From the NCBI GenBank assembly GCA_964106645.2, contig OZ067041.1: a DNA stretch of 64,000 nucleotides; one strand, 5' to 3'. Both the position numbers and the translations under genes were made by a program. Shown here piece by piece: positions 34,101 through 50,900 of this stretch (positions are counted from its first letter, which is position 1; each line of letters begins with the position of its first letter). The notes below the pieces were generated by a model. The model was not told the DNA's origin and did no database searches. It was given only the letters and a program-made list of their open reading frames with translations. This stretch comes from Podarcis pityusensis. Its lineage: Eukaryota.

Positions 34101-35934
34101 TTCATGCCCAGCCCCCCTCCCCACAGGGCACCAGGTCTTCCACCAGCCCCACTCCCCACAGGTCACCGCTGCCCTCCTATTACGGGGCTTTCATTTAGGT
34201 TTAAATTGTGTGAATTGGGGTATATGAATTTGCTTGAACAGAGCGCGAATGCTGCCACTGCGGCAGGAAGAGACCCGGCAGCCCCACGTGCCTCTGCCAA
34301 AGCAGCCCTCACCTCAGCTACCTGCTCCTGGGCCCAAAAGCAGGCGTAGTGGAGGGGGGTGTTCCCGTGCTCGTTCACCGCGTTGATGTCGGCCTTGAAC
34401 TGGATCAGCTGAGCAGGGCAAGAAGACAGAGGGTGGGCTGGGGAAGGAAATCCCACTCCAAAAGACCTCCACAAAGTGAAATTCATCCCCCCCCCCCAGA
34501 GGGAGATGCGCCAGACGGCCACCCTCTTCCCTCTCCCTGCAGGGGGCGCCCTAAGACCCAGAGGAGGATGTGGGGAAGCAGGGGTGGGGACCGGGAGCCT
34601 TGGGCAGCCCCCTCCCTGTGGGGTCCCCCCTACCTTCTGGACAATGTCCCGGTGGCCGTGGCTGGCAGCCAGGTGCAGCGGGGTGTCGTCCCCCCGGTTC
34701 ATGACGTTGATGCGCGCCCCTCGCATGACCAGCATGTCCACCACGCTGGAGCGGCCCTCGCGGCAAGCCCAGTGCAGGGGACTGAAGCCGTGGTCATCGC
34801 TGCAGGGAGGGAGAGGGGCCCTGCTCAGTGCCCAGGGCAGGAGAGGGGCCAGCCTGGCCAGGGGGCAGAGCTCCAGGGGTCCCGGGGCACCTGGTCAGGG
34901 CTGGGAGTGCCAGAGGCAGGAGCAGCCTGGGAGAGTGGGAGCGCAGGAAACCCTCCTCCCTCCCTGAGCTCACTCTTCTGGAGCCAAGCGCAGGAGAAGA
35001 GGAAGACCAGGCCTTAAAAGGAGATCTGAGCCAGGAAGACGGGGCAGCCCCAGGCCCCAGCCGGGACAGCAGCGAGGGGGCCAAGCAGATGGGAGCATCC
35101 CAGGGGAGAAAAGCAACCACTGGCCCGGAAATCGAAGGGTCGCCTAGTCCGGCCCCTGCAAGGCAGGAATCTCAGCTAAAGCATCCTTGACAGATGGCCG
35201 GCCAACCTCAACTTTAAAACCTCCGAGGAACATCTGCCTCCCCTGTAGAACAGATCAGAAGGGGATCCTGGCTGGCATCACAGACCCCACCCACCCATCC
35301 TTCCTGCCACCCCCAAATCCCTTCAAGCCTTGGGGACCAGACTTGGGGGGGGGGGGTGGCTGTGGCTGCTTCAGAGGACTAGGAACAAGTTCAGGACCAG
35401 AGGAAAATGAAGCCACCCATTTGCCTGACCCTGGACTCCCTAGAGGGATTTGGGGGTCGTTGCACAGCCCCCAGCTTCAAGCCGCCTGCCCCCAGGGAAG
35501 GAGGCTGGCTCCTTAGGCAAGGGGCTTCTCCCACCCCCCACCCCAGGGCTCCTCCACAGCAAGACTGAAATGAGGGGGGAATCTGGGCAGCCTCCCCTCA
35601 CTGCCCTCCTCCCCTCGGGCTGGGCTGGTGCTTCTGGACTCCCGCCACCTGCTCTGCCATCCAGGCTCCCCCCCCCCCCCAGCTCCGGCAACAGAATTCC
35701 TGCCGGCGTGTTTCGGAGCTGCGGTCATTTCCTGTCCTTTCCAGCCAAGGGGACGAAATGCAGGACGAAGGCGGCTTGGGGGCGCGGGGGGCGGACAGGG
35801 GGACTGGGGGGCTCCCTCCCTCCCTCCCTCCCGCTCCCCACTCACCCCTGGTTGAGGTCGTTCTCCGTGTTGTCCAGCCAGAGGCGCACGGCCACGGCGT
35901 TGCCCTCCCGGCACTGGGTGAAGATGTCGTCCAT
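31142..35934 (-). CDS. ILK: Integrin-linked kinase (ankyrin repeats + pseudokinase), 452 aa
   Basis: Exons (-): 35934-35846, 34799-34634, 34408-34313, 34058-33962, 33452-33369, 33245-33160, 33078-32969, 32868-32741, 32334-32213, 32124-32025, 31537-31407, 31291-31142; total 1359 nt. [21 protein letters not shown] start; pseudokinase [18 protein letters not shown]; end PILEKMQEK*. Confidence 0.98.
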
Positions 35935-39800: not shown

Positions 39801-40282
39801 AAAGGATTACATGATTGGTAACCATTCAGAGCTCCAGCAAAAACAATGACCTATAGCATTTGGGGCCCCTCTCTTTGGGGGGCCAGGCCAAGCCGTCTCC
39901 CAGCCCTCCCGGGTCCTGCAGGTGCTGATCTCCGCCCTCCGTCTCTCCTCGCAGGGGGACCCTCCTGGTGGCCGAGGTGGCCAGCCGCTTCCCGGACGTG
40001 CGGGCCTTCGTGGCGGCGCTGGCCCGGCTCGGCTTCCGCCTCCTCCGCAAGGTAGGTCTCCTCCCCCTCCCTCCTTCCTCCCTCCCGGGGGCCGCGCGAG
40101 GCCCCCTTCCGGCCCGCGCGCGCCTCCGCATGGCCTTCCCTCTCCTCTCCTTGCAGGACGTGACGGGCAGCCACTTCTTCACCTTCGAGCTGCGCAAGGC
40201 GGAAGCGGCGAAGCGGAAGGGGCGGGGCGAAGGGGCTCTTCCGGGCCTGGCGCTCCGCCCCTGCCTCTACAAGCGGCGGTGA
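36885..40282 (+). CDS. RRP8: Ribosomal RNA-processing protein 8 (nucleomethylin, SAM-dependent rRNA methyltransferase)
   Basis: Exons 36885-37221, 37644-38124, 38271-38400, 38675-38781, 39955-40051, 40157-40282. MFEEAPW start, [20 protein letters not shown] (SAM motif I), [20 protein letters not shown]-terminal LRPCLYKRR*; AATAAA at 40327-40332. Confidence 0.95.
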
Positions 40283-40474
40283 CGCCACGGGGGGCGGGGC
40301 TTCGTCTGGGCCGCCGCCTCGCTCTGAATAAAGCGCTTTTCTCTCGAAGCGGAAGTGTCTCGTCTCGCAATGCCTGCTGGGGGCTGTAGTTGAGGGAGGG
40401 GCGGCGGCGGTGCGTGGCCGGCGCAAGCGCAGTCCGGCCGAGTCCGGGCAGCAGCAGCAGCAGCAGCAGCAGCG
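40283..40474 (+). promoter_or_regulatory. Compact housekeeping-type promoter of the FBXW7-like gene, overlapping the RRP8 3' end
   Basis: GC box GGGGCGGGGC (40291-40300), ETS CGGAAGTG (~40350-40357) and ZNF143/SBS-like GCCTGCTGGGGGCTGTAGTT (40372-40391), in a CpG island of ~39900-41320. Confidence 0.7.
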
Positions 40475-43400
40475 ATGTCGGGATCGACGGGCGGGCCGGG
40501 CCCCGGCGGCGGCGGCGGCGGGGGCAAGCTGGACATCAACCGGGCCTGCGTGGCGGAGCTGGAGCGGGCGCTGGTCGGCATCGGGCGCCGCCGGGCGAGG
40601 GGCATCGTGCGCAAGCGGGAGGTGAGGGACCCAGGCGTCCGAGGGGCCCGCTCCCTTCCCCGGGGGGGGGACTCCGCTCCGGGCGGGAGGGGCTTCTCCG
40701 GGGGCTCCTCTCCTCTCGGTGCGTGACGGACGGGGCGCCCTCTCCCCGCCAGGAGCTGAAGGGCTTCGCCTCCCTGGACGACCTGCTGCACGTCAAGGGG
40801 ATCACGGCGCGGATCCTGGAGCTGAACAGCCAGCGGATGACCTGCTCGCCGCCGCCGGAGCCCGCCCGAGCCGCCGCCTGCCGGGCGTCGTCCTCCTCGG
40901 CTCCGGCGCCCGAGGTGGGCTTGGCGGCGACCTTGGCCCGCGTCTCCGGGGCGGGCGGGGGGCGGGCGGAAGAAAGCCGGGCGGGGGGCGGGCGGCCGGG
41001 CCGAGGCTCGCTGAACCCCGCTGCCCGCTTCCCCGCGCAGGCTCCGGACGAAGAGGCGGGTCGGTCCCCGCCGCGTCCCGGGCCGCGGGAGAGCTGGGCA
41101 CCGGCCTGCTTGGCGGCCGAGGAGGAGCCGGGCAGCTCCTGCCCGCCGGGGGCGGCCGACTCCGAGGATGAGACGAGCGGCGGCGGCAGCAGCGATGGCG
41201 AGGAGGGCGGCGGCGGCGGCGGCGACGTCTACTTCTACTACACGGTGGACGAGCGCTGGATCGACTACCTGGAGCGGACGGAGGGCGGCGGCCTGATCCG
41301 GCACACGCGGCCCAAGGTGAAGAAGGGGCTGCGGGGGGAGAGGACGGGAAGAGGGAGACCCCCGGCAGAGCAGGAGGCTGCCCGGGATGGGCCAGATCCA
41401 GCAGACGCTTCTCCTTCGGAAGCTGCCTGGGGAAAGGAGCCCAGAGAAAGGGACGGGGCTCTGGGGCGCAGCAGCTGAGAGGGGCTGGGCAAGTTTTCGG
41501 TTTGGCCTTCTCTTTGGCCCAGGGAGGCTGGCAGGAGAAGAGGGTGATGCTGGCCAGGACCTTCAGGTTCTTCCTGGAAATGTCTGTGGCATCAAAAGCT
41601 TGTGCTGAGCGTTTCTCAGGGGTGCAGCCAAGGGACTGGGCTGACCAAAACAAGTGGGTGGGACCACTTGAATTTAATGCCTTGTTCATGATATCTTTTC
41701 TTTTCCTCGCTGGAGGAATTTTTGAAGTTGGAGCACATTTTTCCTGTGCAGATTTGAAATCTGCAATTCATGGAGGAGGGGCTGTTGGGGGCAACTAGCC
41801 ACCATGGCTAAGCATGCTCTGCCCTTCAATGTAGGAGGCAGCGATGCCTCTGAAAACCAGGTGCTGGAAGCCACAGGTGACCAGAGGTGGGGGGAGTGTT
41901 GTTCTTGGACACAGATTGTGCCTGTGGGTTTCCATAATGGGCATCTGGTTGGTCACTGTGGGGACAGAGGGCTGGACTGGATGGGCCTTCTGATCAGCAA
42001 GCCCAAGAGGGTCAGTGTGGTTTAGACCACACTCCCATTCACATCCCTTTTTGAATCTGCACAATGGGGTGAGCTCCTGTTGCTTTGTCCCAGATTCTGC
42101 CAACCTAGCAGTTTGAGAGCGTGCCAGTGCAAGTACATAAATTGGTACTTCTGTGACAGGAAGGTAAATGGCATTTCTGTGCGCTCTGATTTCCGTCACT
42201 GTGTTCAGTTGCGCCAGAAGCGGTTTAGTCCTGCTGGCCACATGACCTGGAAAAACTGTCTGCGGACAAACACCGGCTCCCTCAGGGTGAAGCGAGATGA
42301 GCACAGCACCCCATCGTCACCTTTGACTGCACTTAACCTGGGGTCCTTTACCTTTACTTGATGGGCCGTTGGCCTCATCCCGCAGGCTCTTGTGATTCTC
42401 GGGTGTGTTCTGGCCATCAAGGCTCCAAGGATGAAAGTCAAAAGCCGTCAGGTGGGGAGAGGGCTGCATCTTTATTCCCCACCTCCTGCCCTTACGAGGT
42501 TGTTGTCCCAAAGCACAGTTTGTAGATCTGTGTTCTGAGAGAAAGTGTTGAACCTTCCAGTCTTTTGGGGAGGCAGGAGGCATGGGGGCCCTGGCATGGC
42601 TGCTGTGCGGTGGAGGCAGCAAGAAGGGCGCCCCACTTGACCTGATGTGGCGCTGCGTGCATTGCATAGCCTTTCTTCTTGCGGAGCCGAAGGGTTTCCT
42701 GGATCCGTGTCACTCCATTCCGCCCCATCTCTTTGCATTGCAGATGAAGCGCAAGTCAGAGAGCGGCCCGGATGGCAGAGCCCAGTCACCTGGCAAGAAG
42801 CTGTGCAAAGGCTCCGAGAGGGGCAGGTGAGGAGGTTGCGGGTGGCGCTTGGGAGCTCCTGCAAGGTGCCGGGGGAGACGGGGTCTGTCTCCAGCCGGAC
42901 TCTTGACTTGGGCCCCTGGCCGTGGCATTCTCCTGACATACTTGCTTCCTCTCCAGAGTGTTGGGCCCCTGTGTCGCTAGCCCCACGGCCACCTTTGGGG
43001 ATTTGCGGAACGCCAAGGCAGGCCAGGCGCGCTGCCGGCATGTCCCCCCAATGACACCACCCCCTGAGCTGCAGGACTGGCTGCGCACTTTCCAGGTGAG
43101 CGGCAGGCAGAGGCGCCTGTGTCTGTGTGAGATGCATGAGGCCCTCGGCTGGAGCCAGAGCAGGGCTGCGCTTTCTGGCTGGCTTGCAGCTGACCTTCCG
43201 ACATTCGGCAAAGGCCTTTTTCCACGAGCCGGGCATTTGGCAGATGTTGTGCTGTGGTGTGTTTCTCATTTCCTATTTTGTTTTAGGGGTTTGATCTTAA
43301 AAGTGAGCTGATGCATTGTGGTGTTTCAACATTTAGAAAGCGACAAAGCTTTTGCTTTGATTGCTTTTATGGGCTGCTTTGTGGCCTTGGTTCTGGCGCA

Positions 43401-46400
43401 GAGACGGGCTGCAATCCTGGGTGTTGCGCTTGATCTCCCCTTACTCCTTTCTCCCGCCAGCGCTGGAGCGGCCCAGAGAAGCTGCTGGCTCTGGATGAGC
43501 TCATTGACCGCTGTGAGCCTCCCCAGATCAAGCACATGATGCAAGTGATTGAGCCCCAATTCCAGCGCGATTTCATATCACTGCTGCCCAAAGAGGTGAG
43601 TGTCTCGTGGGTGGGGGACCTCGGAGGAAGAATGCAGGGCAGCCGAGAGAGGACAGTGGGGAGTTGTTGGCCGAAGGTGTTGGTGGAAGAATGAGCCTGC
43701 AGGGTGTTGTTAGAAAGCCTTGAGCAACAGGTCAGGAGATCAGAATCTGAGCCACAGTCAAGAGGGGACACGATAGGTAGTTGTAAAAGAAGTGAAGAAG
43801 TGTGCATGCACACAAAAGCTTATACCAGAACAAACTTAGTTGGTCTATAAGGCAGTATTGGACAATTATTATTTTTATTATTTCGACTGCGTCAGACCAA
43901 CACGGCTACCTATCTGCGTCTGAAACAAATAAGAGTCAGAACTATTCATACCAGCTACACATTTTTAAAGTGTGCATGAAAACTCACAGAAACACTAGGA
44001 TGAAGTAACAGAGAGAAACTGGAAGAAGAGAACTTTATCTGAAGTGCAAATGTGGCACCAGCAGGAAAATTGAGTAGAGCCGGTTGCTTTAGCAGGAGAT
44101 GAGACACATCAGAGAAGGAGCTATTTGATTTGATTACAAGGCCTTGGAAAACTTTTAACGGCAAGAATCAAAGTTATTGGAGAACCTGAAGGCCTGGTGA
44201 GAAGCTAAGAGCCAGAGTTCAGTTCCTGCCAAAGAGGAGAAAAAGGAATGAGACAGGCAAGGGAAGGAGCAGCAGCAGAGGGCGTTGCAAGAGGGAGGAA
44301 GAACGAATCAGCCCCAGAGAGGGAGGGTAGGAGAGCTTGGCCAAGAGCAAGAGGCGGGTGTCCCAGGCCTTGTCTCTCCAAGGCAGCTGCTCATTGTGCA
44401 GCAGAAAGTGATGGAGAAGAGGAAAAAGTGGGTGTGTGGTAATTGGGCAGGGAAATCAGGCCTCTGGGATCCAAAAGATTTCTGGGTGCTAAGGCAAAAG
44501 TTGGGCTTTATGCTCAAATTAGGCTTTAAAATGTAAACAGATGCAAAGTACAAAATCTTGGTTTTTTGAAAGTGATTGTTAAATGGTTTTAAATGGTGTT
44601 GTCATAAGTGGCAGATGGGCAGAACACTTTCAGTCAAAAGCTCCTTTTTCTTAATTTTTAAATATACAAACATTAAGGGGAGGCTGTCAAAGATGTCAAG
44701 GGAGGGAAGAGAAGCGGTCAATGGATTTAGCTCGCTTGAACGTCCGCGTACGTGAGCTAATGTAGCGCACGCTCTCTCCTTGCCTCTCCAGGCCAAAGCA
44801 GAACTTCCCTTGTGAGGTGCAGGCTACCATTTTTAGAACAAAAGTGGTGTCATAGGGAGTCCTCTGTAACACATCCAAAGAAAGCCAAATCAGACGGGAG
44901 TGGCAAGGAGGACAATAAGAAATGGCAGGAGGATGCTTGGAGGGCAAGAGATTGGCCCAGATGGACAGGACAGGGAGCTCAGCCGCAGACTCTGCTGGAT
45001 TGGAAAGGCAGGAGAGGCCTTGTGGGCTGTGAAGCAGTTTGGGATTGCGTGGCCACAGTGGCCCTGACAGCTGCTGTGTGGGAGGAGGGCGTGGACCACG
45101 GGCTTTCCAAAAGGCCTTTGCCCAAGGCCTGGCTCTGATCCAGCTCTCTTCTTGGAGGAGCATTGGAGGGCTGGTGAGGGTAAAAGGATGGCAGCAGCCA
45201 CTCACCCACTTTCCCAGCTGTGCGGGACCTGTTGGTGTCAGGTCATCTAGATGGCAAAGTCTCCACATTGCTTTGGTGGACGTGAGAAGCTGCCCAGCCC
45301 AGCCCCGTGCTCTCCATGCCTGGCTTGCCATTTGCACCCAGGGAGGCCTTTCACGGGAGGAAATCGTGTCCCTTTTGCAGTTGGCGCTCTATGTGCTCTC
45401 GTTCCTGGAGCCGCGGGACCTGCTCCGGGCGGCGCAGACCTGTCGCTACTGGCGGATTTTGGCCGAGGACAACCTGTTGTGGCGGGAGAAGTGCCGCGAT
45501 GCAGGTGAGGCTCAGCTCCTGCCCGGTGTTGCTTCCCGGCTGCCCTTGGGCCTCCTCCCTGTCACAGCCGCTTCTCCCTCCTGCAGGTATTGAGGAGCCC
45601 CTGAGTCTGCGCAAGCGCCGGCTGCTCAGCCCAGGCTTCATGTACAGCCCCTGGAAACTGGCCTTCCTGCGGCAGCACCAAATCGACATGAACTGGCGCG
45701 GTGGGGATGCCCGCCCCCCCAAGGTAGGGGACCTCTCTTGACCCCCACCATTGGGGTGACGTGGTGCAGGGTTTACACACCTCGCCATGGCCTAAGACGC
45801 TACTCTGGGATCTCCGGGGTGGCTGCACGATGGGGACCAAAGAGCAGGCTCTGGAGGAAGAGCAACCCAATGCCTGGGTGCCCAGCTGGGTCCCAGTCCC
45901 TGTCCTATACCAGGCAGGGGCCAGGGCTCAGTGGTGGGCTGGGACAGACATGTGCCCCATACTCTTGAGAGCTGCTGCTGCTGCTGCTGCTGAGCTAGGT
46001 GGACCAGGCAAGCACCTTTGACTTCTGGCAAAGAAGATCCAGAAGGTAGAATTATTCTGGCTATTCACAAATGCGGGATGGGGGGGGGGGGGAGAGACTT
46101 GGTTGCTCCTTGAATTGGGGCTGTCACTGTGGCTGAACCTCCAGCCCTTGCAGAATTTGAAGTCCGCCTGCTTGATGCCAGCTCCTGACCGCTGGGCCTG
46201 GTCTCAAGCCTTGGAGAACTCAAGGCCACTGGGCTTGGGGAGGAAGCTGCCCCTTCCTTCAACCGCAGAAAGGGGGTGCAGGGTGATGCCGGCTGGCCTG
46301 CTAATTCTCTCCCTGGACCAGGTTCTGAAGGGCCACGATGACCATGTCATCACCTGCCTCCAGTTTTGCGGCAACCGCATTGTGAGCGGCTCAGATGACA

Positions 46401-47771
46401 ACACGCTCAAGGTGTGGTCGGCTGTCACCGGGGAGGTGAGTCTGGGAAATGGTGCTGTGGGCGGGGGTGGCTGTGGCTCCGCCTTCCTGGCTCTGAGCAT
46501 CTTCCTCCTCCTCCCGCAGTGCGTTCAGACCCTGGTGGGGCACACGGGGGGTGTCTGGTCTTCCCAGATGAGGGACAACATCGTCATCAGCGGCTCAACA
46601 GACCGCACCCTCAAGGTGTGGAACGCGGACACGGGCGAGTGCGTGCACACCCTCTACGGGCACACCTCCACCGTGCGCTGCATGCACCTCCACGGCAGCA
46701 GGTAGGTTGGGGGGGGGAGTCGCTCCAGGGACCCCTCCTGCCCCTCCTGCCTGGGACTCAAGCTGCTTGTCTCTCCTCCCTTGGCAGGGTGGTGAGTGGG
46801 TCCCGGGACGCCACCCTCCGCCTCTGGGACATCGAGACAGGACAGTGCCTGCACGTGCTGATGGGCCACGTGGCCGCCGTCCGCTGCGTCCAGTACGACG
46901 GGCACAAGGTGGTGAGTGGCGCCTACGACTACACGGTCAAGGTCTGGGACCCCGAGACAGAGAGCTGCATCCACACCTTGCAAGGCCACACCAATCGCGT
47001 CTACTCCCTGCAGGTGAGGGACCCCGACCCCTTCCCTCCCCACCCCCCGAGTCGCACAGCCCCTCACTCCTCCCACCCCTCTCTTGCGCAGTTTGATGGG
47101 ACCCACATTGTGAGCGGCTCCCTGGACACCTCGATCCGCGTGTGGGACGCCGAGAGCGGCAACTGCCTGCACACCTTGATGGGGCACCAGTCCCTGACCA
47201 GCGGGATGGAGCTGCGCGACAACATCCTGGTCTCTGGCAACGCCGACTCCACGGTCAAGATCTGGGACATCAAGACGGGCCAGTGCCTGCAGACCTTGCA
47301 AGGTGGGTGCTGCGGGCAGCTGGCTGGGCTGCAGGGACCTGAAACTCCCCATTGGCCCTCACCAAGTCCTGGGGGGAGGCTTTTCTCCCTCTGGGCAGAG
47401 GCCTGCCACCAGGGGCGTCCTCCAGGAAGAGGCGGCTGGGCACTTGTGGCTGGGCACAGCAGCTGATGGCTGCTTCTCACCTTCTTTGCCCCCCTTCTGC
47501 AGGTCCCAGCAAGCACCAGAGTGCCGTCACCTGCCTCCAGTTCAGCTCCAAGTTTGTGGTGACCAGCTCAGACGACGGCACCGTCAAGCTGTGGGACCTC
47601 AAGACGGGCGAGTTTGTGCGCAACCTGGTGGCGCTGGAGAGTGGCGGCAGCGGGGGGGTGGTCTGGCGCATCCGGGCCTCCAACACAAAGCTGGTGTGTG
47701 CCGTGGGGAGCCGCAACGGAACCGAGGAGACCAAGCTGCTTGTTTTGGATTTTGACGTGGACCTGAAATGA
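40475..47771 (+). CDS. FBXW7-like F-box/WD40 protein (FBXW7 paralogue) with an N-terminal ComEA-like helix-hairpin-helix domain, 734 aa
   Basis: Exons 40475-40621, 40753-40914, 41041-41316, 42744-42826, 42957-43095, 43461-43595, 45381-45504, 45587-45723, 46322-46435, 46520-46701, 46788-47013, 47092-47302, 47503-47771; 2205 nt, all GT-AG, in frame. MKRK entry exon, D-domain [16 protein letters not shown]-box [21 protein letters not shown]40 repeats and C-terminal [14 protein letters not shown]. The core (42744 onward) is near certain; joining of exons 1-3 is inferred from phase-0 junctions. Confidence 0.9.
43792..43916 (+). mobile_element. Penelope-like retroelement fragment
   Basis: GAAGAAGTGTGCATGCACACAAAAGCTTATACC...CTTAGTTGGTCT...CAGACCAACACGGCTACC resembles reptile Penelope-like terminal repeats (recognised from memory). 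Confidence 0.55.
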
Positions 47772-47938
47772 GGAGGAGGGCTGGACTGGCAGGGGGGGCC
47801 TGCGGGACGGGCATCCCCCCAGGCGCGAGTGAGTGGTTCCTGGCCGCGCACCTTATTTATAGCTCGGCTGCAGGGCCCTGGGCGGCTGGCAGAGCGGCAG
47901 AGCACCCAAGTCTGCTTTTTGTACACACTAATAATATA

Positions 47939-50900
47939 TCACTTTATTTCTGTACATGGCTTTCTCTGTGTCATGTGGGTTAAGCCCGGGAGGGGGGAGG
48001 GGGCTCTGGGGGAGGGGGCAGGGCGCTGCCTTTGCCCCGTGCTGCCGCCCCCCTCCCAGCGCAGGAGGCTGACGGCGTGGACACGCTGCTGGAGGCACAG
48101 CTCAGGGCCCATCTTGGAAGGCAGGCTCAGGTGCAGGATGACGCGCTGGCTGCCCAGCGCCACGGGGACCTCGGGGACCCCCAGGTAGACGGGGCACAGG
48201 TACTTGTTGGCCGGGAGCTTGGGGGGGGTGCCAGCGGAGGCCATGTCCCAGGTCAGGCGGGCGGCCTGGATCCAGATGGTGGGCAGCGGGCAGGGCTCGG
48301 CCGTGCGACTCTCCTGCAGCAGCCCACTGTGGGCCTTCCAGAAGGCGTGGCGCAGCTCCAGCCCGCTCAGATAGATGCCTTTCTCGGGGGCGCTGGTGGG
48401 GGGTGGCCCACTGGGAAGGACCTGGCAAAGGAAGGCAAGAGGGAGGGGGAAAGGGGGTGCTCAGGGACCGGGGCTGCGGGGCCTGCCCCTGTGCCCACCC
48501 CCATGCCCGCCCGCCCTCTCCTCCCTACCTGTTGGTGCAGCTGGTAGCGGTGCAGCTCCTGCCTCTCCACGCGAGCCCTCTCTTGCAGCACGGCCAGGAG
48601 GAGGCGGCGGGGCTGGTGGAAGGCGGCCAGCTGGTAGTGGGCCACCAGTGGCCCGCTGATGGAGCCCAGGTAGCTGCACAGGAGCTGGGTCCGCTGCTTG
48701 AGCGTCTGCAGCCAGGCCGGGGGAGCCTGGGGGCCGGTGAGGGCGTAGGGCAGCCAGGGGCTGGGCAGGCAGCCCTGCTTCAGGTGGTAGAGGATGGTGC
48801 TGCAGCGGCGGGAGGAGCAGGGCTCCCCCTGCAGGCGCTCCTGGGCGCAGCTCAGGTCGCGGCCCACCTGCTTCAGCAGGGCCAGGAGGATGCCCGCCTC
48901 CTCCAGCAGGAAGCGCTGCAGGGGGCGCGGCCGGGGGCGGGCCTGCCCTTGCGGGGGGCACCCCTTCCAGCCCACCTCCCAGCCGCACTCGCTCAGCTGC
49001 TCCTGCAGCTCCTGCACCAGCCGGGTCCCGTCCCGCAGCAGCTGCTCCAGGGCGCCTGTCTGCGGGCGGCAGGGGGCCCGGCGGGGCTGCCACAGGCCCT
49101 GGGAGGCCTGCAAGGCCACCAGCAAGGCCTGGCTCCGCTCCGCCAGCATCCGCTGCTGCAGCGCGCTGCACAGGCCCACCCCGGCAGGCTCCATGGGGCT
49201 GGGCAGTTGCTCGATGCCGGCCTGGGTGGCGGCCGCCGCCTCCTCATCCGTGTTCCCTACAGGGGGCAAGGAAAGGGAGGGGGATCAGCAGAGCACCCAG
49301 CGCCCCCACCGGCAGGCTCTTCCCTGCCCTCTTCAAAGGCATTAGCCAATTCACGAAGAGCCCCGCAATGGCCACCCACTGCCGCCACAGCTGGAGGAAG
49401 CAAGGCTTCCAAATACCCCTTGCCGGAAACCGCAGGCGGGGAGGGTGTTGCTCCTGTGCTTGAGTCCCGCTTGCGGGTTTCCCGCAGTGAGAACAGGATG
49501 CTGGGCCTGACCCAGACGGCTCTCCTGATCTTCTCTCACCTGGGTTGGGGCAGCCGACGACTGTGGCCACGAGCTGCTGGAGGCTGGAGGCTGGCTGCAG
49601 GGGGGAGGCGGGAGCCAAGCAGGCCTGGCACAGGCTCTGCACCACTTGGGCGTCACCGCTGTCCAGGATGTGGCCCCCATAGAGCATGGTCCCTGCAGAG
49701 GCAGAAGAGCCAGCCGTTTTTCGGAGGGGGCCTTCAAGGCCTTGGCTCTTGCAGGCTTCCCCTTGAACCCCTCACTCAGCCCTCTTTCCGTACCGGCCAG
49801 CTCCTGCAGGGCTTCCTGGGCTCCGTCTGTTAGGCAGCTCAGCCTCTCCTGGATCCTGAGCCCGGCCAACACTTCCCCGTGGCTCCTGCAAGGGCAGCAC
49901 AATCTCAGGCACAGGGCAGAGTCAGAGCAAAAACCGCACTCCTGGCTTGCCAGAGTGAGGACCGCCTTGGCCCGGGGGGGGGGGGGGGCGCCTGCTCCCA
50001 ACTTTCTTATGGGTCTCAGCAGCTGAGAGGAAGAGCCCTTGGACAGTGGAACAGAAGACCTTGGCAGGGGACGGGCCTTTCCTTCACTGAAGGATTTTAA
50101 GCAGGAGTCTTTAGCTGTGATTCCCGCATTGCAGGAGCTTGGACTAAAGGACCCTTGGGGTGCCCCTACAATTCTGGTTCTATGAAAGATTCTTGGGTAA
50201 ACTTCATTTTGGGATCAGTGGGAAACAGGTTAAGAAACAGGAAGTGAGTATAAATAGGTGGTTCTCCCAGTTGTGGGATGTAGAAAGTATTCCAGTGTGG
50301 CAGCCATGAAAAAGGAAATTTGCATGTGAGGGATCAGTAGGAAAGGAACTGAGAATAAAACTGCCAGTATCATCATGCCGTTTCAGGAATCTGGTGTGTG
50401 CCCACATTTGAAGAACGATATACAGTTCTGGGCACCTCCTCTCCCCTCAAAAAGGTTATTGCAGAGTTGGAAAAGATTCAGGAGGGGCCCCCTGAGGGGG
50501 TGGAGCGACTCCCTTACAAGGAAAGGGGGCAGCATTTGGGACTTTTTAGTTCAAAAAGTGAGGGGCAACATGGCACACGGTAAGTGGAAAGGGGAAAACC
50601 TTCTCCCTCTCTCATAACCCTCAAACGCATAGATGTCCAATGAAGCTGAATGCCAGAAGGGCAGATGGAAGAAAGTTCTTCCTGCGGCACAGAGCCAGAC
50701 GATGGCCCTCACTCTCGCAGGAGACAATGGCGGCGGCCATCTCTAAAGAGGAGCCACAATGGCAATCCTCTTCCTCCACCATTGGGGCAGCTGCTGGAAA
50801 CCGCGCGAGGGGAAAGGGCTCTGGGGCTCCTGTTCTGCCTCTGGTTGGCCACGTGGGAACCGGAGGCTGGGCTGAATGGCCTGATCCAGGTGGCGGCTCC

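Follow-up and report, generated by a model that had tools for sequence, protein, structure and literature searches.

A 64,000-nucleotide (nt) stretch of the Podarcis pityusensis genome (contig OZ067041.1; hereafter, the window) carries a second FBXW7-type gene, here called FBXW7-like, in which a helix-hairpin-helix (HhH) domain precedes an F-box and a WD40 propeller. FBXW7 is a much-studied tumour-suppressor ubiquitin-ligase receptor, usually treated as a single-copy vertebrate gene. Judged on its sequence, FBXW7-like is a real, old, conserved and machine-annotated gene with the features expected of an FBXW7-type receptor. We think it probable that this ancient gnathostome paralogue encodes, as its main product, one polypeptide running from HhH to WD40, and that this would act as a SKP1–CUL1–F-box (SCF) receptor, perhaps with an HhH tether to DNA or chromatin.

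Structure of the FBXW7-like gene

We built the exon model by direct reading of positions 40300-41500 and 42600-47900, followed by a script check. The locus spans 40475-47771 on the plus strand and has 13 exons, which sum to 2205 nt and encode 734 amino acids (aa) plus a stop, as an earlier note made from the letters of this DNA had proposed. All introns are GT..AG, none of the 13 exons contains an in-frame stop and the phases chain correctly. The phase-0 donor AAG/GTGAAG at 41316 and the start of exon 4 at 42744 with ATG AAG CGC AAG (MKRK), which the same note had joined, agree in both sequence and phase. The parts of the gene are as follows.

Exon 1, 40475-40621, plus strand: start codon, Gly-rich stretch and first helix-hairpin-helix (G-I-G hairpin, basic run)
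Exon 2, 40753-40914, plus strand: second helix-hairpin-helix (G-I-T hairpin) and start of the linker
Intron 2, 40915-41040, plus strand: 126 nt, in frame, stop-free, optional
Exon 3, 41041-41316, plus strand: acidic linker, conserved motif ([22 protein letters not shown]) and phase-0 donor
Conserved motif of ~30 aa, 41221-41316, plus strand: end of exon 3, directly before the MKRK exon
Exons 4-5, 42744-42826 and 42957-43095, plus strand: MKRK basic patch and variable region before the D-domain
Exon 6, 43461-43595, plus strand: D (dimerisation) domain
Exons 7-8, 45381-45504 and 45587-45723, plus strand: F-box and linker to the propeller
Exons 9-10, 46322-46435 and 46520-46701, plus strand: part of the eight-blade WD40 propeller (exons 9-13)
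Exons 11-13, 46788-47013, 47092-47302 and 47503-47771, plus strand: remainder of the WD40 propeller, with the stop codon at 47769-47771

Exon 1 is identical to its Podarcis muralis counterpart in 48/49 residues, and exons 4-13 in 533/535. For domain and database searches we used the window exons singly, with natural database proteins of close relatives as full-length stand-ins.

An FBXW7-type body with an intact degron pocket

Exons 4-13 had been read as an FBXW7-type D-domain, F-box and WD40 propeller, and both Pfam and alignment to FBXW7 bear this out. Exon 7 matches F-box-like at 6.1e-15 (55.2 bits, cut-off 24.3) and F-box at 8.2e-8, and WD40 matches fall on exons 9-13. For exons 10 and 11, the best natural solved match was FBXW7 itself (2ovp_B, 5v4b_B, 7t1y_B), at 1e-80 and 1e-91. 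With no gap in either alignment to 2ovp_B, query 1-58 pairs with chain positions 151-208, and query 2-75 with chain positions 213-286. Numbering this chain from residue 263, which we take to be the start of the construct, and using the pocket residues of the published structure, all eight phosphodegron-pocket positions checked are identical to human FBXW7 (W425, R441, S462, T463, R465, R479, R505 and Y519). The arginines said to be intact are encoded where they had been placed: R465 at 46676-46678, R479 at 46804-46806 and R505 at 46882-46884.

The exon 6 D-domain is identical to that of canonical Podarcis FBXW7 in 41/45 residues; against canonical FBXW7, the F-box is identical in 37/41 and the WD40 propeller in 301/331 (~91%). 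Identity to canonical FBXW7 is only ~50% in exons 4, 5 and 8, and exons 4-5 are 100% identical to lacertid FBXW7-like. FBXW7-like thus shares with FBXW7 (Fbw7/hCdc4/Sel-10/Ago) the exon plan from MKRK onwards, the D-domain, F-box and eight-blade WD40 propeller, and the degron contacts, but differs from it in belonging to a separate lineage at a separate locus (next to RRP8) and in having an N-terminus of HhH domain plus acidic linker.

With its near-identical D-domain, FBXW7-like may pair with canonical FBXW7. Heterodimers of this kind had been suggested on the grounds of D-domain conservation, and this ground holds; for the pairing itself, structure prediction argues weakly. The predicted complex between the D-domain plus F-box regions of the two proteins scored 0.59, with 0.00 for the best of 3 controls. 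The mark for this score is passed by 51/78 solved complexes and 2/108 mismatched pairs, and scores of at most 0.60 take in only 5 of the 78 solved complexes together with all 4 passing mismatches (of 180). Runs agreed in at least 83% of contacts, the predicted local distance difference test (pLDDT) value of the partner was at least 65, and such a pass could stem from the model having memorised solved relatives.

A probable single product from HhH to WD40

A spliced transcript provides evidence that the HhH exons belong to the FBXW7-like protein. Logan contig L001 (run SRR27537577, from a chicken-type bird; 2474 nt) contains a single uninterrupted open reading frame (ORF) at 25-2265 that encodes 746 aa, carries HHH_3, F-box and WD40, and reads RPK-MKRK across the exon 3/4 junction. 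An ORF of this length on a 2474-nt contig can have come only from spliced RNA. Its product is colinear with all 13 window exons, and chicken RefSeq proteins share its 90% cluster, as do four further transcript-contig products. In the congener P. muralis, RefSeq XP_077782918.1 ('FBXW7 isoform X2', 736 aa) has a splice pattern identical to the 13-exon model, including the join of exons 2 and 3.

The same architecture is widespread. The N-terminal region matched 46 proteins of 600-1100 aa, most of them with precomputed PF12836 (HHH_3), F-box and WD40 assignments, and more than 40 database proteins, from shark to echidna, have this combination. Birds, turtles, squamates, caecilian, newt, lungfish, sharks, rays, chimaera and echidna all have it, so that the HhH exons are present in orthologues from sauropsids, amphibians, lungfish, cartilaginous fish and a monotreme. 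The phase-0 exon 3/4 junction is conserved from shark to bird. In unspliced ORFs from nine relatives, the sequence invariably reads RPK, then V, and then diverges totally; the exact end of similarity at RPK points to a conserved donor directly behind the codon for lysine.

Some observations weigh against a single fused product. Support for the 41316/42744 junction comes from relatives. Mauremys XP_044859837.1 and Pogona XP_020647533.1 end past exon 3 by intron-3 read-through (the former from Mauremys mutica LOC123363112, 296 aa; the latter an old Pogona 'RRP8' model), and some RefSeq models have their start at MKRK, with a length of 539 aa in lacertids and 538 aa in catshark. The gene may thus additionally yield products that consist of the HhH part alone or lack it. 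Taken further, these models could mean that exons 1-3 are mainly a separate HhH gene of ~200-300 aa ending in intron 3, that the FBXW7-type body begins at MKRK and that fusions are artefacts or rare read-through. We judge this improbable: it is opposed by the bird contig and the other contigs in its cluster, by the stop of similarity at the donor and the conserved junction, and by the replacement of 539-aa models with longer versions (XP_034970875.1 to.2, in lacertids).

The surrounding sequence also speaks against a separate HhH gene. Neither AATAAA nor ATTAAA occurs within intron 3. A CpG island at 40000-41400 (plus strand) covers the end of the RRP8-type gene upstream, the presumed promoter and exons 1-3, with a GC content of 0.69-0.81 and a CpG observed/expected ratio of 0.71-1.08 in 200-nt steps; past 41400, within intron 3, this ratio drops to 0.07-0.6, and no CpG island lies before exon 4. 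Intron 3 being CpG-poor, exon 1 has the sole visible CpG-island promoter that might serve exon 4.

An ancient paralogue of FBXW7

Matches to the stretch from MKRK up to the propeller fell into two clearly separated score classes, the lower of which is shared by divergent FBXW7-like proteins and canonical FBXW7.

FBXW7-like, main group, 405-517 bits, 78-100% identity: birds, turtles, squamates, caecilian, newt, lungfish, coelacanth, sharks and rays
FBXW7-like, divergent but HHH_3-bearing, 372-377 bits, 74-75% identity: echidna and elephant shark
Canonical FBXW7, 372-377 bits, 71-72% identity: all vertebrate classes, including therians, teleosts and frogs

A maximum-likelihood tree, built on 37 sequences trimmed to the part from MKRK onwards, splits FBXW7-like from canonical FBXW7 with 100/100 support on a branch of length 0.18. 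The window gene falls outside the canonical clade and is a paralogue of FBXW7 rather than FBXW7 itself, as had been claimed. Podarcis, Chrysemys, Carettochelys, Protopterus and Pristis each contribute one gene of each kind. Terminal branches of sauropsid FBXW7-like are short, and echidna sits on a long one. Since cartilaginous and bony vertebrates occur on both sides, the duplication must, on this tree, predate crown gnathostomes wherever the root lies. The tree was built without an outgroup, which counts against reading more into it, and a tie to the vertebrate genome duplications is thus something we only infer.

The HhH-bearing form occurs in sawshark, whale shark, sawfish, electric ray and elephant shark, making the fusion as old as the duplication. 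No canonical FBXW7 match carries PF12836, in agreement with the claim that FBXW7 itself lacks HhH. Searching proteins of 387-1230 aa with the sawshark HhH domain returned only gnathostome FBXW7-like among 62 scored candidates, with no lamprey, invertebrate, teleost, frog or therian, although the search was word-based and this is a weak blank.

The matches listed include no FBXW7-like copy from a therian, teleost or frog. As echidna has a copy, the loss on the mammalian side may postdate the split of monotremes. These absences are the sole point for the view that FBXW7-like lacks function, whether as a duplicate in decay or as an artefact of assembly or annotation. With 13 open exons, canonical splice sites, the 533/535 identity to P. 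muralis, short branches and transcripts, we reject that view as almost certainly wrong.

A 'FBXW7-like' entry from the teleost Scleropages falls inside canonical FBXW7 in the tree.

The HhH domain, the acidic linker and the exon-3 motif

Exon 1 matches positions 5-35 of the 65-position HHH_3 (PF12836) profile at 22.9 bits and exon 2 matches positions 38-61 at 14.1 bits; either exon alone falls short of the curated cut-off of 27 bits. Matching consecutive halves of the profile, the two exons form one domain that is split by intron 1. The intact domain scores 46.2 bits in P. muralis (P0158), 53.5 bits in sawshark (Pristiophorus; P0074) and 47.5 bits in the chicken-type transcript product (P0170). 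The HhH module and acidic linker that had been assigned to exons 1-3 are thus where they were expected.

We aligned the N-termini of 16 orthologues with the three window exons. The HhH core has 23/60 invariant columns and is 58-63% identical between lizard and shark, while the acidic linker is ~25% identical and variable in length. The motif at the end of exon 3 is 77-87% identical among lobe-finned lineages (lungfish to birds); it can still be recognised in sharks, at ~30% identity. Conservation of the HhH domain far above that of the adjoining linker argues for selection on it as part of the FBXW7-like protein. Every row has G-I-G or G-V-G in the first hairpin and G-I-T or G-V-T in the second. 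The domain as a whole is strongly basic, and unusually so in the helix that follows the first hairpin.

The exon-3 motif has no Pfam match and no match outside the FBXW7-like gene. Exon 3 matched only 14 of 1.84 billion representatives, all of them the same gene in sauropsids, and had no meaningful match to canonical FBXW7 (9/92).

AlphaFold2, given this alignment, modelled the N-terminus of Sceloporus as a four-helix HhH domain of ~65 residues (pLDDT 93-98), followed by a disordered linker; for the exon-3 motif it predicted a short helix with low confidence. The top ranks of a Foldseek search against the PDB, all with probability 1.00, were ComEA 8dss_B, the KIF22 HhH domain 2edu, the ComEA-related 2duy and Tex; PsbU, PolC and TEFM ranked lower, also with high probability. 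By sequence, the closest solved chain is EEPD1 (1.6e-8, to both its modules), then ComEA and KIF22.

EEPD1 (9yi2), the best solved-sequence match, is a vertebrate ComEA-type HhH protein whose second module is likewise off the G-h-G consensus (G-I-N). Its HhH modules are joined to an endonuclease/exonuclease/phosphatase domain, whereas FBXW7-like has an F-box receptor and a single module. ComEA (8dss, 8dfk, 2duy) is the best structural match, with 38% identity and a root-mean-square deviation (rmsd) of 1.7 over 68 columns for 8dss_B, and a template-modelling (TM) score of 0.72 and rmsd of 0.8 for 2duy; it differs in being a membrane-anchored DNA-uptake receptor of competent bacteria, and FBXW7-like in its G-I-T second hairpin and basic helix. 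KIF22 (Kid) shares the (HhH)2 fold (2edu, Foldseek rank 2, 40% identity over 58 columns), but its HhH domain is C-terminal, on a kinesin motor, and the sequence likeness is weak (E 0.012). The KIF22 domain ties the motor to chromosomes and is a precedent for a tethering role.

The proposal that FBXW7-like is tethered to DNA draws on its likeness in fold and sequence to ComEA, EEPD1 and KIF22, and several points tell against it. The second hairpin is G-I-T instead of G-h-G. No Foldseek match to the PDB reached E ≤0.001 (best 1.6e-3), owing to the small size of the domain. Some HhH domains of the same fold, such as PsbU and the N-terminal domain of TEFM among the Foldseek matches, are not known as DNA binders. 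The fused gene could then be real with an HhH domain that does not bind DNA and is instead an isoform-type module for localisation or protein contact, leaving a second, partly redundant FBXW7. Canonical FBXW7 likewise has alternative N-termini (alpha, beta and gamma) joined before MKRK, and with a WD40 pocket ~91% identical to that of FBXW7 the substrates may overlap fully. We regard this as a serious alternative, though clearly the less probable one: the closest relatives of the domain in sequence and structure are the DNA binders EEPD1, ComEA and KIF22, and the domain is strongly basic and, from the gnathostome ancestor onwards, has changed much less than the adjoining linker.

Isoforms, annotation and literature

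Database models differ in their treatment of the N-terminal exons. In P. muralis, the equivalent of intron 2 is 44 codons long; isoform X1 (780 aa) retains it and X2 lacks it. A UniProt model (776 aa) retains it as well. The length of intron 2 is a multiple of three in both Podarcis species, which hints that retention is tolerated, and for the window gene a 776-aa form with intron 2 retained is equally possible as the 734-aa form. In echidna (Tachyglossus aculeatus; P0081, P0172 and P0173), one isoform skips the equivalent of exon 3. The lacertid 539-aa models noted above are older versions.

Models named 'RRP8 isoform X' (many birds; Podarcis, Pogona and Phrynosoma) join an RRP8 exon to exon 2. 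They skip exon 1 and hence carry half an HhH domain, and are either real read-through transcripts or a recurrent annotation merger.

RefSeq and UniProt name the gene 'F-box/WD repeat-containing protein 7-like' or 'FBXW7', or merge it into 'RRP8'; entries under the 7-like name cover sharks, lungfish, amphibians, reptiles, birds and echidna, and automatic annotation under a 7-like name had been foreseen. Our literature search found no description of the FBXW7-like gene, its HhH domain or its function, and the author of the earlier note had known of no functional description either. The Xenopus 'Fbxw7-like' genes are moderately similar and lineage-specific, with HhH unreported (PMC4556705), and a report on synteny concerns canonical FBXW7 only (PMC2446394).

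Genomic neighbourhood

The flanks match those given earlier, RRP8 on one side and a dynein gene on the other. Upstream on the plus strand are ORF pieces with Methyltransf_8, the RRP8 domain, which match the RRP8 part of the Podarcis models. Downstream, Dynein_C at 48370-49269 on the minus strand is the 3′ end of a dynein-heavy-chain gene convergent with FBXW7-like. Beyond the RRP8-type gene, still further upstream, the minus strand has an ankyrin-repeat ORF (ILK type) at 34166-34744, consistent with the ILK–RRP8 neighbourhood of the human map. One further element precedes the start codon.

Poly(A) signal AATAAA of the RRP8-type gene, 40327-40332, plus strand: 143 nt before the start codon at 40475

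Eight CAG triplets occupy 40448-40471 in the 5′ leader, within the CpG island, ending 3 bases before the start codon. At the other end, ~600 nt separate the FBXW7-like stop codon (47769-47771) from the opposite-strand Dynein_C ORF (48370-49269). The plus strand contains no AATAAA or ATTAAA from 47772 to 48400, so the convergent 3′ ends of FBXW7-like and the dynein-heavy-chain gene may overlap.

A candidate SCF receptor with a possible DNA anchor

How such a protein might work can be sketched from its relatives. By analogy with FBXW7/Cdc4, the retained MKRK basic patch would place FBXW7-like in the nucleus, the F-box would bind SKP1, and the arginine pocket would recognise doubly phosphorylated Cdc4-type degrons, so that the receptor would present substrates of this type to SCF for ubiquitylation. 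The likeness to KIF22, ComEA and EEPD1 suggests, less firmly, that the basic HhH domain might bind DNA without sequence preference and hold the receptor on chromatin. Degradation would thereby be focused on DNA-bound phosphoproteins, and the acidic linker may modulate the tether and could compete with DNA. In its fullest form, which we put forward tentatively and consider unlikely to hold in every part, the HhH domain would park the phosphodegron reader on DNA, with the linker and the exon-3 motif perhaps gating it, for local turnover of DNA-bound phosphoproteins; such a division of labour with soluble FBXW7 would have lasted more than 400 million years and then been given up in therians, teleosts and frogs.

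Most non-therian jawed vertebrates, including chicken, lizards, newts and sharks, carry this second FBXW7 gene, which has an identical degron pocket plus a further domain of DNA-binding type. Work on FBXW7 loss of function in chicken cells, reptiles, urodeles and cartilaginous fish may be buffered by the paralogue, and annotation poses a problem of its own, as many birds and some lizards have the gene merged with RRP8 or named plain 'FBXW7'. The pair of genes offers a natural experiment in directing one degron reader to another compartment. Should its HhH domain prove to bind DNA, FBXW7-like would amount to an SCF receptor that carries its own DNA anchor.

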